Positions 26,345 through 52,317 of a stretch of 64,000 bases of DNA are shown here, in pieces (within the stretch, counting starts at the first letter, position 1; each line of letters opens with the position of its first letter). Source of the DNA: Oikopleura dioica (taxonomy: Eukaryota > Animalia > Chordata); the NCBI GenBank assembly GCA_907165135.1, contig OU015568.1:16503208-16567207 (forward strand), read 5' to 3'. Below the pieces are notes generated by a model, which was not told the origin of the DNA, ran no database searches, and saw nothing but the letters and a program-made list of their open reading frames with translations. Position numbers and translations under genes: made by a program.

Positions 26345-29300
26345 ATGTCAAAGTGCTTTTGTGGGTTGTTTGAAAAGAAGCCAGCTATAAAGCCTTGTAA
26401 GCGAATAATATTTCCAATGGCCTTGTTCATTTAAAAATTTTCTATTTAGCGAAGCCTCTGGAGCTGAAGGTCGCGGAGCCTTTTGTAAATGAGCTTGGCG
26501 AACCAACAAATGGAGCCTCGGAAGGTAACTTCAAAGATCCAGTCGACTGGTTGGTCGACGAGAATGGGAAAAGGCACCGGACCAACATGTACGATCAGAA
26601 AAACCTGATCGTGCGCCGCGCTGGAACGATAAAACTGAAGGTCGCGTTCATGCGCGAATTCAACTCGGCAGGAGACACGCTTAGACTCGAGTTTTCGACT
26701 GGCAAAGCGCCGGCTATTCAGTTCGGAACGATGGCCATTGTCGATTGCAAGGAAGACGGGAAGTTGGATAAGCTCGGCTGGTCAGGCACGCTTGAAGTGA
26801 ACGATAAAATGATCGAGGTCGTTGTCAATGTTCCTCCAACAGCGGCTATTGGAAAATACTCTGTCAAGGTTTCCGCGAATTCTCAACTTCTTATTCGTCA
26901 ATTTTCATTTTCAGTTGTCGCTGAGAACACTTCTCATCGACGGTTCAATCAGCGTTTCTTCCTCCAACCAGCCAAGTATCTACATCATCGCGAATCCAAT
27001 GTCCGAGCTGGACGGATGCTATTATGAAAACGACAACAGCGAGGAGTTCCTCGATGAGTACGTCTTCAACGACGTCGGAGCCATTTGGTCAGAAGACCGC
27101 GATTATGGCAGATTCAAATGGCTCTACGGACAATTTCAAGAGCCCGTTCTCGACCTTGCCTGCCATCTACTCGCGAATGATGATCGAACCAAAAAACCGT
27201 CTGGGGAGTGTGGCTTCGAGATCTCATTAAAATCGTCCGTTTGTTGAGCTCTAAGGCCAACTCCAACGACAACCGTGGCATTCTTGTAGGAAAATGGGAA
27301 GAACCCTACGACGATGGAAAAAGGCCGACTTCTTGGAGCGGATCCGTCAATATTTGCCGGCAATACATCAAGAATGGATACAGACCGGTCAAATACGGAC
27401 AGTGCTGGGTCTTTTCCGGACTTTTGACGAGCTTGCTGAGGTCGATCGGGATCCCGACTAGATCTGTCACCAATTTCTCTTCCGCCCACGACGGGGACGA
27501 CACGATGACAATCGACATCTACAAGGACAAAGATAACAATGAAGTTCGGCTGAATAGAAGCAGAGATTCCGTCTGGAACTTCCACGTCTGGAACGAGTGC
27601 TGGCTCCAGCGCCCTGACTTCCCGAAAAATATGGGTCTCGACGGCTGGCAGGCTGTTGATGCCACGCCGCAAGAATACTCGAATGGAATCTATCAGTGCG
27701 GCCCAGCGCCAGTAATAGCTGTTCGCCAAGGACAAACGTTTTTGAACTTCGACACCAACTTTGTCTATGGCGAGGTCAACGCGGACAGATGCACCTGGCG
27801 GCTGAACGAAAACTACGAAATTGTTGAGCTGACGGAAAGGAAAACGGACGGGATTGGACGCTTCATTTCGACGAAAGCGGAAGGAAGAAATAATTTTGCG
27901 CGGAGGGATTTGACAGATCAGTACAAATTCCGGTAAATGAGGAATTTAAAAGGTGTAGCGGGGTTATCAGTTGGGCGCCCTGACTGTCCTTTATTGGCCC
28001 TTATCTCGGTTAGGGTCAGAGTTGCAAATTTTGGTTCATTTTTGCTGAGCTGAGCTGACCTGATATTTGTGAAAAATTCTATGAGCTGCCCTTTTTCATA
28101 GGTCATTGAGCTGAGCTGAGCTGAGCAGACCCTAATTAGAGCTGAGCTGAGCTAAGTGAGCTGAACTGAGCTGTTTTTTTTGTATTTTTAGTAGTAAAAT
28201 TGTGTTAAAATCATTGAGCTGGGCTGAGCTGAGCAGAACTGATCATGTTCAAAAATTATTGAGCTGAGCTGAGTGATAATTGTATGAGCTGAGCTGAGCA
28301 GATCAGATCATTTTAGAAAATTACTGAGCGACTGCTCAGCTCACTCAGCTCAACAAATTTCCAACTCTGGTTAGGGTTAGGGACAACCGACTGGGGGTTC
28401 CTATTGGGGGTTCCGGGGGCGAAGCCTCCTGCGTTAGGCGTAAGGGGGTCCTGAAGGCGTACCCTTTGGGTACGGTTTAGGGGTGCTGACTTTTGACACC
28501 CTTCTATCGTTAAAAATATATAATATTTTATAATTATAATATAATATTTAATATTTTCGTTCAGGGAAGGGTCAAAAGAAGAACGAGAGGCATTCGACCG
28601 GGCTGTGGCTTACGCCGGAAACAGCAGGAGAGAAAGACGAGAATTCATGTTGAGAAACTACTCGAAAATCCAACGCGAGCTTCTGAACAAGACTCGCTCG
28701 ATGCTAAAATTAGAAATCGTCACGGGAGAATTTTCGATCGGCGACGACCTTGAAATCAAGCTCTTGGTTGTTTCTGCGGACAACAAAGTCGTTGAACTCG
28801 TTGAAAAGCCTAAGTTGACACTTTACTCAACTTACTACAGTTTCGGTTCCATAAAAGCTGAAGATATTTTTCGAGAAAACTTTTTTCTCGAATATTTTCT
28901 AGAATTTTTTTCGAGAAAATTGTTTTCTCGAATTTTTTTGAAAAATTTTCGAGAGAATTATTTTTTCGAATATTTTCAAAAAAAAAATTCGAGACAATAA
29001 TTTTCTCGATTTTTTTTTCTTTTTTCGAGAAAATTATTTCTCGATTTTTTTCTTTTTTCGAGAAAATTATTTCTCGAATATTTTTAGAAAATATTTTTCG
29101 AACCCAAAAACAGAGGAGGAGTAAGCCAGGTTATCGGCCAGCGCGCTTTGAAGCAAAGTTCCATCCAGAAGCGCTTCGACTCTTCAGTCGTTTTCTCCCA
29201 CAAGGAATACGAAGGGCGACTCGCTCGCGATGGCCAGAGTCACATGAGAGCAGATGCGATGATCAAGGTCAAAAATCCGACAACTGGCGAGATCGAGACG

Positions 29301-30374: not shown

Positions 30375-32687
30375 ATGAAAAATCTAATAATTGGTTTAAC
30401 AGTTTTTTTCGTCTTTCTCATTTCTTCGGGCGTTCTACTTTATGTCTTTATTGATTTTGGGAATGACGAATTTACCATCAACGAAGATTTGGATCTTGAC
30501 TTTGACAATTTCACGAAGAGTAAAATTGTCACTGTTGAATTAGACGACAAAGGTTATAAAAAGGCGAAATATAAACTAAAAGAATAATCAGAGATGACTG
30601 CGATTTTCACTTCTGATGCATCATTCTCAGATTCAATGGACTTTTGCAGTGAAAAGAATGGAACCCTTGCCTGGAATAGGAAATTGTAAAATTTTTCTAT
30701 TACGGAGACAGACTCCCTTATTTTAAAATTTGCTGATATTCTGGACTAAACCAAAAAATAGAAGTGAATTTCGGATAACCAATAAGATTGCTGTATTTGG
30801 CCTACCGGCCAATCAAAACCATGATCCATTAAATCACTTCCATTTTTCGGTTTTGCCCGATAAATTCTTGAGTTAGGGTTAGAGTGGTCTCCGTTTGCCC
30901 AAGTCGCCGTTTGCCCAAGTCGCCGTCTACCCAAGATCGCCGTTTGCCCAACTTGGGCAGACGGAGACTTGGGCAAACGGCGATCTTAGGCAGACGGCGA
31001 TCAAATTGAAAATATAATCATAATTCAATTCAAAGAAATTAATTATGAAATCAAAATTAGCAGGATAGGATAGATTTTAAGTGGTAAAGTTAAATCGCTA
31101 GTTTTACGTCCGAGGCCTACACATTGAGGAAACGATGGATGCGCCGAGTCCTCACAAGCGCTAATCCCCAACTTGGTTGAATTGATGGTTTCCCATATTG
31201 CTGTTTCTTGTGATTCATTTTCGGTCCGTTCTATTTTTGGAATTGCTTCTGATTGAAACTGAGGGAAAACAGTCATTGTGAGAAGTGAGAAAAAGGGAAA
31301 AACTGATGAAACACTTCCCAAAACCTCCGGGAGACGGACGGTGCCGGAACCAAATTGGTACCCGGTACCAAAGTCAAGCATATTTTCTGGCTCATCTAAA
31401 AACTAATGTCCGCTCCGCGGCTGCAGTGTGAGGAAACTCTATTTATGGAACGAATATGGAGACATGTTTGAAATCCCGGGTAAAGGCTCGCTTTCACCGG
31501 TACCTAATGACCGACCGAATATACTTCAAGTATAATGAATGATTAACTCTTCCGGGAATAGTTTATTAGGACTTTTATTGAGAATTTAGCGACTTTCATA
31601 ATTAAACCATCCATTACGAAGGCTCTTCGTTAACAATGTAAACGATGTCATAATTCGGAAAGCTTCCGTAGAGTCCACGATACTGTTTTTTCATTTCGTC
31701 TCTTATTTATGTGTTTATGCTCAAGAATTTATTCGAAAATCGGATACAACTATTGAAAAACAATATAAGAAAATTGTGGTGGTCTTGTCAAGGATCCACG
31801 GTTAATAACCGTTCAAAAGACATCACAGGACAACCTTTGTTTTCACCTGAAAGTCTCTGCAAATCAGAGCGCAACCAGCAGACTAAGTGATGATAATGAA
31901 ATTGTCGCCTTACTTCTATCATTTTATGATCAATTAAAAAAATTCACATCGCCGTTTGCCTAAGATCTCCGTCTGCCCAAGTTGGGCAAACGGCGACTTG
32001 GGCAGACGGCGACTTGGGCAAACGGCGACTTGGGCAAACGGAGACCACTCTTAGGGTTAGGTTCGTAGTGATGGTTTTACATGATGAAAAAAGAGTCACG
32101 AAAATCTCTGACTTTTCTGAAGAAGATATTCCCTATTGGATCAATATTAGTGCGAGAACAAACTTTTCGGACAAGAATCTTGAACCTGAATATAAAAAGG
32201 TAAGCTTTTTGTTTGATTTTTAATTGAATTTTTAATAATAAAGCATCAAAATTTGGTCTCTCAAACTGGGGGACATGTTGGTCTGGCAATTTATTCACCA
32301 ACTGAGTCCTGCATTTTTATATTCGCCGATATCTGGACAAATATTGGAGCCAACTACCAATTCGTCTGCCAGAACCAAATATTCGACGAGGAAGGGAGGG
32401 TGATAATAATAAACGACAGCTCAATCAGCTGCGAAATGCTGAAAATCAACAAGACCTTCTTCGACGAGTTCAATTTGTGGAACAAAGACTTCTTGAACAT
32501 TTCCTGGATAATCGATAATAAAGAAAAGCAGCCTTATTCGTACAGACTGCTCCTTGGATTTAAAACAGCCCTGATGTCGAAGAACAGACCGGCTTTCTGC
32601 AGTGCTCACCAAAAATCATTCCTCAAGGAATCCTTTGGGTGTCTTCAAGAGATTCTTATGTCTCGGCTGAAAATAATTATGAGTTAG
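30375..32687 (+). CDS. Probable type II membrane protein with a divergent C-type-lectin-like domain
   Basis: N-terminal hydrophobic anchor LIIGLTVFFVFLISSGVLLYVFI; 40-nt intron; FSDSMDFCSEKNGTLA; then, after the MULE-containing intron, IPYWINIS...ESCIFIFADIW...YQFVCQ. Confidence 0.45.
30882..32050. mobile_element. MULE/Foldback-like non-autonomous element, 1169 bp
   Basis: TIR GAGTGGTCTCCGTTTGCCCAAGTCGCC with arms built of ~17-bp cgccgtttgcccaagt subrepeats; 9-bp direct repeat TTAGGGTTA at 30873-30881 and 32051-32059. Confidence 0.88.
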
Positions 32688-33914: not shown

Positions 33915-34603
33915 GGTTACACGACGTTTTCAGCATACCGACGTTTTCAGCAACCGACGTTTTCAGCAAACCGACGAATTCAGCAGCGCTGAAAATGTCG
34001 GTATGCTGAAAACGTCGGTTTGCTGAAAACGTCGTTTTCACCTGAAAACGCGTGGGCGTTTGCAGTGGCGAAATTTTCAAACAAACGGATCTAAAGATGA
34101 CGTTCTCGGAATTTAATTGGCTAATTAAAAGTTTAAAGCATTTCTAAATGAGTCATTAAAAATTCATTATTTTGAAAAAGTAATAAGAATAAGCCAAATA
34201 TCTTTTTAATACATAATTATCATAATAATCATAGTCACCAGTTAATTAACAATATTAACGTATTATTCAGTTTCGTGAATATGCTTTTAAAACATTGAAA
34301 ATAATGATAAATCAATATTTTAAAGGATAAGAATAATAATTTTATTAAATATAATCTTTTGTAACTGATTCATTAATATTACATCGATTTTATGTTATTT
34401 AACGATTTACGGAAACATCTTTTCAGATGAAGTTTGATAAAATGGTTGCCTCTCTAAACGCCTACGCGTTTTCAGGTGAAAAACGACGTTTTCAGCAAAC
34501 CGACGTTTTCAGCAAACCGACGAATTCAGCAGCGCTGAAAATGTCGGTATGCTGAAAACGTCGGTTGCTGAAAACGTCGGTATGCTGAAAACGTCGTGTA
34601 ACC
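33915..34603. mobile_element. MULE/Foldback-like element, 689 bp, with modular arms and an AT-rich core
   Basis: GGTTACACGACGTTTTCAGC ... GCTGAAAACGTCGTGTAACC; 9-bp TSD GCAGAAATC at 33906-33914 and 34604-34612; arms of ccgacgttttcagc subrepeats. Confidence 0.9.
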
Positions 34604-49031: not shown

Positions 49032-49480
49032 GTGTGGTTCTTGTCACCGTGAAATGCTGCGTTTTTTCTTCTGATAAAAAATCTCTCTTTTTTCAAATTA
49101 TCTTTTCTCTTGTTTCTGTTTCTTTCTTTATGATGTTCTGCTTCGTCTTCTTTCTCGTTTCGATTTAACACGTGTTTTTATTCTGAAAATAAACTCGTTA
49201 AAATATTTTTATAATGACTTTTCGTAGTTACAGTTTGACGAAATTTTTTGACGAAAAGAGGATAAAAAAATGACCAAAATTTTGGCCCTAAATTTTCGAA
49301 AATGGTGATTTTTTTTCCGGAAAATTTTGGAAAAAAAGATTTTATTTTTGTGACCAAATTTTGGCCAAAATATTTTTCGGCCAAATGGGGATTTTCACTG
49401 TTTATTCCAAAAAAATTTGCTTTGTTAAACAAAATCGTAAGTTGTGGGAATTTTCTGACTTGACTTTTCAACGCGGCAAC

Positions 49481-51393
49481 CAGGGATGTGGATCAGCAAA
49501 AATTTTCCTTTGTTTTGCGCTGCGATTGCGGAAATTTTTCGAACTTATTTTGCGCTGTTTTGCGCTGCGGAATCCGAAAATCACGCAATTTGCGGAATTT
49601 TGCATTGTTTTGCGGATAATCAAAATTTGTTAATTTTGCGAAAATTTTGCGGATTTTGCGCTTTTTGCGGAATTGCGGATTGCGCGATGACACGCAATTT
49701 GCGTTATTTTGCGAATTTTGCGGGATTTTCGCGCATTTTGCGGAAATTTGCGGATTTTGCGGAATTTTCGCGCATTTTGCGAAAATCTGCGAATTTTGTG
49801 GTATTTTTGGCCCTATTTATTTCTACTTGAAATGGAGAAATTTTGGGGACATTATTCCGAGGTTACAAAAAGTAATTTTCAAGGTTTTCAAAAAGAACCA
49901 TAATTAAGCTAAAAATAATGATAAAAAAGATTTTTTAAATGCTGGGTGTGGGTGGGGTTGGGGACAGAACTGAGATTGATCAACTCAGAGTTCAAAGCCA
50001 TTGTCAAGCCCCTTAAATTTAGAAATCAAGGAACGGGGCTGAAACGGCCCGAAGGGCCGTCAAGCCCCTTAAATTTAGAAATCAAGGAACGGGGCTGAAA
50101 CGGCCCGAAGGGCCGTCAAGCCCCTTAAATTTAGAAATCAAGGAACGGGGCTGAAACGGCCCGAAGGGCCGTCAAGCCCCTTAAATTTAGAAATCAAGGA
50201 ACGGGGCTGAAACGGCCCGAAGGGCCGTCAAGCCCCTTAAATTTAGAAATCAAGGAACGGGGCTGAAACGGCCCGAAGGGCCGTCAAGCCCCTTAAATTT
50301 AGAAATCAAGGAACGGGGCTGAAACGGCCCGAAGGGCCGTCAAGCCCCTTAAATTTAGAAATCAAGGAACGGGGCTGAAACGGCCCGAAGGGCCGTCAAG
50401 CCCTTAATTTTAGAAATCAAGGAACGGGGCTGAAACGGCCCGAAGGGCCGTCAAGCCCCTTAAATTTAGAAATCAAGGAACGGGGCTGAAACGGCCCGAA
50501 GGGCCGTCAAGCCCCTTAAATTTAGAAATCAAGGAACGGGGCTGAAACGGCCCGAAGGGCCGTCAAGCCCCTTAAATTTAGAAATCAAGGAACGGGGCTG
50601 AAACGGCCCGAAGGGCCGTCAAGCCCTTAAATTTAGAAATCAAGGAACGGGGCTGAAACGGCCCGAAGGGCCGTCAAGCCCCTTAAATTTAGAAATCAAG
50701 GAACGGGGCTGAAACGGCCCGAAGGGCCGTCAAACCCCTTAAATTTAGAAATCAAGGAACGGGGCTGAAACGGCCCGAAGGGCCGTCAAGCCCTTAAATT
50801 TAGAAATCAAGGAACGGGGCTGAAACGGCCCGAAGGGCCGTCAAGTCCCTTAAATTTAGAAATCAAGGAACGGGGCTGAAACGGCCCGAAGGGCCGTCAA
50901 GCCCCTTAAATTTAGAAATCAAGGAACGGGGCTGAAACGGCCCGAAGGGCCGTCAAGCCCTTAAATTTAGAAATCAAGGAATCCAGCAAAATTCCATTGA
51001 ACCGTCCGGTTTTATTTTTGCCGGCAAAATGACCGGTCGGTTAACTACGAGTTCGGACGGTTTTTTGTCGGCCGATTTTTCAGTTTTTCTTCTGCAAATT
51101 ACCGCCGAAGTTGTAAATGCGATGATGAATGAGGATTTGATTCGGAAATCTTCACAATTAACATCAAAAAAAATGTAGAAATTCTACGCCAAATCCCGCA
51201 AACTTGCATTTTGCGGACTGCAAATGTATTGAGATTTTGTGGAATTTACGCGCAAAATGCGCTTTTGCGCGCAATTTTGCGGAAAAATTGCGGAAATTTT
51301 TGGGGCTGATTTTGCGTTGTTTTGCGCTGCAGAATGAAAAATCCCGCATTTTGCGCTGTTTTGCGGATTTTGCGCTGCGGATCCACATCCCTG
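49481..51393. mobile_element. hAT-like non-autonomous element, 1913 bp, containing a satellite array
   Basis: Perfect 14-bp TIR CAGGGATGTGGATC / GATCCACATCCCTG; 8-bp TSD GCGGCAAC at 49473-49480 and 51394-51401; ttttgcg-rich subterminal regions. Confidence 0.9.
50003..50981 (+). repeat. 56-bp tandem satellite, ~17.5 copies
   Basis: Unit aagccccttaaatttagaaatcaaggaacggggctgaaacggcccgaagggccgtc; copies nearly identical. Confidence 0.98.
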
Positions 51394-52317
51394 GCGGCAA
51401 CTATTCAAATAGTCTATTAGTCACAACAAGCTATTTTGTTCCCTCTGGTTCATAGATGACTGATCATAGGTGTACTTTTGTGTGCTCCCCGAAGAGCTAA
51501 CACAACTCGCCAGGACGACCCTGATAATGACCCTGGGCGCGTGTGACAGCTTGAAACCAAAAGAGTGTCGATAAGGGTGTCGACATAATTATTATTGCCT
51601 TTTCCAGCGGAAAAACGAGCGCGTTTCCAAACAACGAGTGCAAGTATCAATATTGACCGGCGGAAGAGATTTGGACCACCGTGCGTGTCAACGCGCCCCA
51701 GGGCAAGTTACGAGGAATTTCATTGTGGCGTTTTTTTCTGACAGTTGTGGAAAAATAGCTTCTCTGGATTTCGGAAAAAAAATGAAACTCAACTCGGAGC
51801 TTTGTGAGAATATGTTACGCCATCATGCCGCACCAGTCACGAGCGCCACAATACTGAACAAAATCGATTTTTACTATTTGTTCAGCCACAATGCTTAAGT
51901 TAACTCGCCCTCAGCGCCCCGTGATCACTCACTTCGGTAATTATTTTAATGAGAAATGATCTACTGTCAGAGAAAAATTAAGACTCGATAAAAAAAACCT
52001 GCTCTTCCTTGTTTTCACTTAATTTTTTCATCAATCAAGGTCGAGGAAATGGTCCGGCAATGGGAGGCGTTTTGCCGTTTCCAGATTGATCGTAAATTTA
52101 TATGAAAAAAGAAAGAAGACTTCTCTCTTAGGGGTGCGAAGTGAGTGATTAAGAATCGTGGAAAATGAATCGTAAAGAAAATAAAATCGATGTTATTTGA
52201 TACACTGGTAAGAGAAACACTAGAGTCAGGAATAGCTGGGGAGAATTTTTGCAGATGTGCGTTTACTTGGAGATGGTGAGAGAATTTGGGTTCGTTTTTA
52301 TGGGAGAAAAGGGGTGG

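Follow-up and report, generated by a model that had tools for sequence, protein, structure and literature searches.

A 64-kb stretch of the Oikopleura dioica genome (C1:16503208-16567207, called the window below; coordinates are window positions unless a contig is named) carries a 1,913 bp transposable element without coding capacity (no open reading frame (ORF) >114 aa), the centre of which is an array of 56-bp tandem repeats. We conclude, with a probability of about 0.8, that the element is a non-autonomous hAT-type copy whose array was carried by transposition as part of a pre-existing cassette, and that the length of this array drifts. By cassette we mean the 56-mer together with a conserved leader of about 110-130 bp, by which it is always preceded. 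The genome searched was the OKI2018_I69 assembly of O. dioica (64,281,565 bases, 19 contigs), and counts from genome-wide pattern searches are lower bounds.

The window element and its transposon family

The element is bounded by the terminal inverted repeat (TIR) CAGGGATGTGGATC at 49481-49494 (+) and its reverse complement at 51380-51393 (-), as seen in the sequence and by pattern search; no further match exists in the window, even when up to 2 mismatches are tolerated. Directly outside both ends lies GCGGCAAC, a perfect 8-bp target site duplication (TSD). Tandem Repeats Finder (TRF) placed the array at 50003-50981 (period 56, 17.6 copies, 98% matches, score 1909), corresponding to 17 full units and a 30-nt partial unit. 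An earlier note on this DNA had reported a 14-bp TIR, an 8-bp TSD and a 56-bp array, and all three are present exactly where it placed them. A blind scan around the array for a 10-nt TIR with a perfect 8-bp TSD gave a single solution, namely this element. No paralogous empty site of the element was found, its left flank having a single copy in the genome.

We then searched the left arm, the right arm and the inner parts separately against the genome and fetched 16 loci. The resulting family comprises 11 complete copies of 349 to 3,011 bp with the same termini. Perfect 8-bp TSDs, mutually different, were found in 11/11 of them, and their flanks differ in all cases, contrary to what segmental duplication with shared flanks would give. 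Thus the TIR/TSD structure of the window element is not due to chance, since every complete copy has these termini and its own perfect 8-bp duplication. This type of TIR occurs at 41 termini genome-wide (about 20 elements) and at none in the reversed-pattern control. With so few termini, this is a low-copy non-autonomous hAT-type family and not a classical high-copy MITE family (MITE, miniature inverted-repeat transposable element). A MITE in the strict sense (<~800 bp, high copy) was likewise rejected for the window copy, given its 1,913 bp and the ~20 elements; the only copies of MITE size are L008, of 349 bp and cassette-less, and L012, of 705 bp. Three TIR subfamilies were distinguished, and the window copy falls into the GGATC subfamily (clade support 100/99 in the arm tree). 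The hAT-like identity proposed in the earlier note agrees with the 8-bp TSDs, with a short TIR (about 10-25 bp class) of the YARNG type starting CAGGG, and with the TTTTGCGG-type subterminal repeats.

The features of the window element are as follows.

49473-49480 (no strand): left TSD GCGGCAAC, the same sequence as at 51394-51401; left flank present once in the genome
49481-49498 (+): left TIR with CAGGG terminus; inverted repeat of 14 nt perfect, 18 nt with 1 mismatch
49499-49800 (+): left subterminal arm, rich in TTTTGCGG-type short repeats; 82-97% identical at 12 other loci
49801-49875 (+): family-specific spacer from arm to cassette; matches confined to copies of the window family
49876-50002 (+): cassette leader, with an A/T-rich start, four G-runs, a hairpin and a short spacer
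50003-50981 (+): 56-bp repeat array (TRF, per-unit variants, DNA fold)
50395-50449 (+): 8th unit of the array, with a double variant (one C fewer, A15T) shared with L003 (C2:12244562-12246001)
50982-51090 (+): right inner segment, a homologue of the central part of another foldback MITE family (~590 bp)
51091-51375 (+): right subterminal arm with TTTTGCG-type repeats (sequence and genome matches)
51376-51393 (-): right TIR (inverted-repeat and pattern search)
51394-51401 (no strand): right TSD GCGGCAAC, abutting the right terminus

The left subterminal arm, presumed to be the transposase-binding region, contains TRF arrays of period 9, 10, 19 and 39 at 49643-49807, and its block 49525-49603 recurs in direct orientation at 51287-51364. 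In the leader, AACCATAA is found at 49896, the four G-runs at 49944-49963 and the hairpin (CTGAG..CTCAG) at 49970-49988. Outside the element, the window also holds short-period tandem blocks at 28864-29101, 30887-32045 and 33922-34596 (16-17-bp and 33-40-bp units). They are of the type seen in MITE subterminal arms, and the 16-mer GTCGCCGTTTGCCCAA is also present inside the arm of F6, a sister family described below.

None of the 41 TIR-type termini examined is next to a coding region. The genome contains a 6-kb hAT element that carries a Dimer_Tnp_hAT domain (L036:1492-7567 = C5:13843991-13850066; L035:2559-8571). This element has a 23-nt TIR starting CAGGGTGTCAAATCG, CAGGG termini and the 8-bp TSD GTGTTAGC, and it carries no cassette. 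Seven near-identical matches to this domain were found genome-wide, and the 6-kb element is a possible transposase source for the CAGGG-ended families. Two other candidates for an autonomous partner were rejected: the L038 region (contig C3), with a decayed hAT domain only, amid many MITEs, and L009, the ~2-kb insert of which (L009:832-2877, copy C1:4331621-4334631) has no ORF >123 aa. L009 is an old copy of the family, and the insertion lies within its spacer. Another family copy, L001 (C5:12605073-12606671), harbors a nested element of ~790 bp at ~925-1716, with TIRs of 16-17 nt of GGGACCCCCCCGTCAGC type, inserted at TTA(A) within a 56-bp unit; it looks like a piggyBac-like, TTAA-targeting, non-autonomous element.

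Inheritance of the array and drift of its length

The complete copies contain 0, 0.75, 0.75, 1.5, 1.5, 2.7, 12.5, 12.7, 17.6, 25.9 and 34.8 units, and one truncated family copy contains 5.8; the 1.5 units of L001 are split by its nested element. The earlier note had considered that other copies with these TIRs might never contain the 56-mer; at least a partial unit is present in 10 of the 11 complete ones. Because the copies range so widely, array length has clearly changed later. That note had left two alternatives, one of them an expansion of the array after insertion.

Its other alternative, that the element moved with the array inside, is addressed by the double-variant unit. An exact search found exactly 2 occurrences of this unit in the 64-Mb genome, one in the window array and one in L003, in both as the 8th complete unit. 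L003 lies on another chromosome than the window copy and has a different TSD, with the same distal junction of the array; four young family copies have this junction in common. The sharing of so rare a unit by these two copies only, on different chromosomes and between different TSDs, supports movement of the array inside the window element. A second marker is unit position 20, where five window-family arrays have a fixed G (99/99 units). This G was already present in the single unit of old, 82-85%-identical copies and was absent from 380 units of four other cassette-bearing families (F2-F5). The window array is five units longer than that of L003. In the arm tree array-bearing copies are spread, and short-array copies form two nested pairs, in keeping with two collapses and subsequent transposition. 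Among the older copies the distal junction differs from one copy to the next, and deletions extend into the right inner segment.

Alternatively, the window copy could have inserted with about 1.5 units and expanded purely in place, its likeness to L003 then being due to gene conversion. The copies closest to it by arm sequence, L001 and L002, do carry 1.5 units, and array length clearly varies over time. However, L001 and L002 form their own pair (89/87 support), consistent with one collapse, and independent expansion would not yield the same 8th unit, the same run of consensus units around it and the same distal junction in the window copy and L003. Ectopic conversion of a 0.7-kb array between chromosomes would also be less parsimonious than transposition from an array-bearing master, and we regard growth in place as improbable.

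We also considered that the array, or its length, might be an assembly artefact of Nanopore collapse or expansion. The OKI2018_I69 assembly is Nanopore-based and Illumina-polished with Pilon, with a median read length of 840 bp (PMC8008620), and most variants within arrays are homopolymer-length changes (CCCC to CCC), which may accordingly be sequencing errors. Yet the array of about 1 kb is well under the longest reads, this architecture, with clean TIRs and TSDs, recurs at more than 10 independent loci, and the substitution variants are locus-specific. An artefact is thus very hard to sustain. The F2 arrays (33-58 units) were uninformative on inheritance: their variant strings fail to align between copies and consist mostly of homopolymer changes. 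Two F2 elements, L021 (C4) and L022 (C2), have exactly 58 units each (3,809 and 3,808 bp) and no common substitution variants.

Several observations weigh against the explanation as a whole. The case for co-mobility consists of one shared variant unit and one fixed family marker, and homopolymer calls in this assembly are unreliable. In L003 a partial unit precedes seven consensus units, so that the registers of the two arrays differ by a fraction of a unit. A position-20 G is likewise found in one further host family, F9, in combination with a G at position 41. As for the hAT assignment, the target preference nTnnnnAn is weakly visible, as a trend only (position 2 is T in 7/11 TSDs and position 7 is A in 5/11). 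No autonomous element with the TIR of the window family was found in the genome, and the 6-kb hAT element shares with this TIR the first 5 nt alone (CAGGG).

Each unit boundary is predicted to form a 13-bp interrupted hairpin with a C-GAA-G triloop (DNA fold, z = -6.2 versus shuffles). C-GAA-G is a very stable type of DNA hairpin and a plausible driver of slippage. In the scheme that we favor, array carriage by a hAT-type element followed by drift, a hAT transposase supplied in trans would recognise the CAGGG-type TIRs and the TTTTGCGG-rich arms, then excise and reinsert the element with duplication of 8 bp of target, as in the general hAT pattern. The ancestor of the family acquired the pre-existing cassette of leader and 56-bp hairpin units once, and transposition has passed it on since; the window copy probably arrived with a multi-unit array already inside. 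Array length then drifts by gain and loss of units, in master copies as well as after insertion. It is probably driven by replication slippage or unequal exchange at the hairpins, or else by copying out of register when the gap left by excision is repaired, and these processes would also erode the distal array junction.

The cassette beyond the window family

The leader core was found 188 times in the genome and never in the control. An exact 31-mer of the unit occurs 560 times and carries the position-20 G in 99 cases, 92 of them in window-family copies and 7 in an element of another family. The earlier note had allowed for the 56-mer lying mostly outside these TIRs, and this is what we observed: the window family holds 92/560 exact units (16%) and <~10% of the at least 188 leader loci. 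As 188 leader cores contrast with about 41 TIR-type termini, and as so few exact units are in the family, the cassette is older and wider than the window family. The suggestion of the earlier note that the element may disperse or give rise to a satellite family is not supported for the window family as source or main vehicle, with 84% of exact units and >90% of leader loci elsewhere.

For host classification we sampled ~30 of the at least 188 leader loci. The flanks of these loci represent at least 13 unrelated arm types, at least 12 of them besides the window family. F2 is a second hAT-like host of leader and array, with CAGGGTGGGG ends and perfect 8-bp TSDs in 6/6 cases, and F5 is a TAGGG-ended hAT-like element with TAGGGTTCCG ends and an 8-bp TSD. 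The first 19 nt of the TIR of the sister family F6 are common to the ACATT subfamily of the window family. F3 and F4 are not hAT, since their ends are of CACTG/CAGTG type, their inverted arms are long and their TSDs are apparently of 3 bp. Two F3 copies, L017 and L026, are foldback-like, non-hAT elements with inverted arms of ~450 bp that are 80% complementary; their ends, AACACTG...CAGTGTT, are flanked by TTT/TTT or AAA/AAA. The window family was shown to be a carrier of the cassette among many others and not the source of it. In metagenome contigs, scans for exact patterns gave no match.

Several side observations concern individual cassette loci. Among the perfect-match leader cores, 19/62 are on contig C3 (2.9 Mb, 4.5% of the genome), which may be a Y-specific region. 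Telomere-type sequence is found beside the cassette, as degenerate TTAGGG-like repeats after a single unit in F8 (L046:~1090-1170), and CCCTAA occurs at the distal array junction of F2 (e.g. L020:4884-4905). At L031:1-1584 (C3:1358000-1359584) two F6 cassette copies are inverted with their left-arm sides facing, in a palindromic arrangement; the leaders are 504 bp apart and the arrays point outwards.

In the leader tree, grouping follows host family perfectly: it requires 12 changes, as few as 13 groups allow, and 0/200 shuffles were as low. Each family therefore acquired the cassette once and then passed it on. In some cases one leader clade unites hosts that belong to different superfamilies (F4 with F5 and F7; F3 with F9).

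These data also bear on whether the 56-bp satellite was born in the window element or its family, all other arrays being descended from it. The window array is indeed very homogeneous (98%), and the single partial unit of the old family copies could be read as a proto-repeat. But this single unit is without the GAA-triloop part and so could not have seeded full units, and a position-20 G without the position-41 G was absent from every unit examined of other host types. Moreover, the leaders of other hosts are 53-93% identical among themselves and form separate deep clades, and, as given above, the large majority of units and leaders are found outside the family. We consider an origin in the window family extremely unlikely.

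How the cassette entered its hosts is suggested by their interiors. The right inner segment of the window element matches the centre of L027-L030 at 87-90% identity. As L027-L030 are foldback elements that have ends of their own, the interior of the window element is a mosaic, and their centre is the source or a relative of the segment. L027-L030 (e.g. C1:5900381-5900975) form a foldback MITE family of ~590 bp with arms 75% self-complementary and ends TTACCATAAG... Similarly, F6 holds a piece of the 16-bp repeat of a third MITE, which is also found in the window at about 30.9-32.0 kb, and deletion junctions in two families show short microhomology. Such patchwork interiors and microhomology fit capture by template switching in excision-gap repair, a process known for cut-and-paste elements, and the window family may have captured the cassette in this way.

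A competing idea is that the cassette is a small, now decayed mobile element that inserted independently into several transposons. In an alignment of 16 leaders from the 13 host types homology starts at or just before AACCATAA, and this one sharp boundary, the apparent single acquisition by each host family and the crossing of superfamily boundaries would all be expected of such an element. Against this, no second terminus, no conserved trailer after the array and no TSD of its own was found for the cassette in any host examined. Nearly every sampled cassette lies inside a TIR element and not in plain DNA, the patchworks of other repeats in host interiors fit capture, and the genome yielded no Helitron Rep domain. 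A decayed mobile element is therefore the less favored origin, although it keeps a minor share of our belief. A Helitron or Helentron origin was rejected, since perfect TSDs and TIRs are present; Helitron_like_N had no match in the genome, which is weak evidence, as no control genome matched either.

The units are far better conserved than the adjoining leader. F2-F5 have an identical 56-nt consensus, whereas identity between their leaders is 53-74% over the 5' half and 77-93% over the 3' half. Five family-fixed changes of the unit (positions 16, 18, 20, 27 and 41) are all in the linker or internal loop and none in the 29 stem or triloop positions, an outcome with a calculated chance of ~0.02. 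Either the hairpin is constrained or the arrays exchange sequence between loci. Several candidate identities were tried and rejected. A structured RNA or ribozyme was not supported by an Rfam scan of the element, which gave chance-level matches only (best 19.8 bits versus a gathering score of 150). A hammerhead-like reading failed as well: a GAAAC-helix-GUC half-core was seen by eye, with no CUGANGA box. The 3' half of the leader is not a degenerate unit, its local alignment score being below the shuffle mean. Nor is this satellite DNA in the strict sense, with heterochromatic blocks of tens of kb, the largest array seen having 58 units (3.3 kb); genome-wide, at least 560 exact units, about 31 kb, are dispersed over at least 188 loci.

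A broader and tentative view, to which we give a rather low probability, sees in the cassette not passive cargo but a hitch-hiking module that is under constraint of its own and has crossed between unrelated families of transposons and between superfamilies (hAT-like, and CACTG-ended elements with 3-bp TSDs). If so, there would be selection on the hairpin (e.g. it could aid host transposition, replication or escape from silencing) or continual exchange between dispersed arrays. In the case of exchange, the arrays would be substrates for ectopic recombination and may feed the extreme genome scrambling of the species. The cross-family cassette is more interesting than the single window copy, and it raises the questions of whether such modules are selected, exchanged or merely easy to capture, and of whether hundreds of near-identical dispersed arrays contribute to rearrangements in O. 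dioica. Unusually frequent rearrangements have been reported among lineages of this species (PMC11067885).

Comparison with known systems

Classical non-autonomous hATs, such as Ds of maize and Mar in Drosophila, have an 8-bp TSD, CAG/TAG TIRs and subterminal repeats, an internal deletion/filler structure and a need for transposase provided in trans; long tandem arrays in their interior are not typical. The window family resembles Ds and Mar in TSD, TIRs, subterminal repeats and deletion/filler structure, and presumably in its dependence on transposase from elsewhere; it differs from them in its long array, and no autonomous partner with matching ends was identified for it.

Tandem-repeat MITEs of bivalves (DTC84 of Donax trunculus and its pearl/CvA relatives) have a variable number of core repeats. 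In DTC84 the palindrome in each repeat was proposed as a hotspot of length change, variants are ordered and flanks are interchangeable modules (PMC3879986). Likeness to the window family extends to non-autonomy, a central short array, a palindrome per repeat, varied flanks and arrays inherited as arrays. In DTC84/pearl elements, however, the putative TSDs are of AA type, a microsatellite lies at one end of the array, and the repeats number about 5 at most (PMC3879986), whereas the window family has 8-bp TSDs, CAGGG TIRs, arrays of as many as 35 units (in one sister host family, 58) and a constant leader.

Similarly, CgHINE of Crassostrea gigas is described as a family of non-autonomous Helentrons with central repeats like satellite DNA (PMC7492417, as related in PMC9659126). 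CgHINE and Drosophila DINE-TR1 share with the cassette dispersed satellite-like arrays inside non-autonomous DNA elements; they are rolling-circle elements without TSDs, unlike the window family with its TSDs, TIRs and cut-and-paste mode. Also cited in PMC9659126 are miDNA4 of Xenopus tropicalis and Xstir/Xmix of X. laevis, in which, as here, a MITE-borne monomer is amplified and transposition disperses seeds. There the satellite is tied to one MITE family (of Tc1/mariner type for miDNA4), whereas the cassette is common to at least 13 host-arm types from at least two transposon superfamilies. In the Tetris foldback element of Drosophila virilis a DNA transposon likewise supplies and spreads blocks of tandem repeats; there the repeats are in long TIRs and seeded a true heterochromatic satellite (PMC4079207), while those of the cassette are internal, in arrays of <=3.3 kb, with no large satellite block in our sample.

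We found no publication describing the cassette or such an element in O. dioica. The window element offers a clean, datable case of a tandem array carried between chromosomes by a cut-and-paste transposon in a very compact chordate genome. With the help of family-specific markers, what was inherited by transposition can be told here from what drifted in length later. The partnership of transposon and satellite is already well documented, and the window element is a fresh example of it; what is particular here is the hAT-type mobility shown by 8-bp TSDs, the constant leader, and a cassette common to hosts of different superfamilies.

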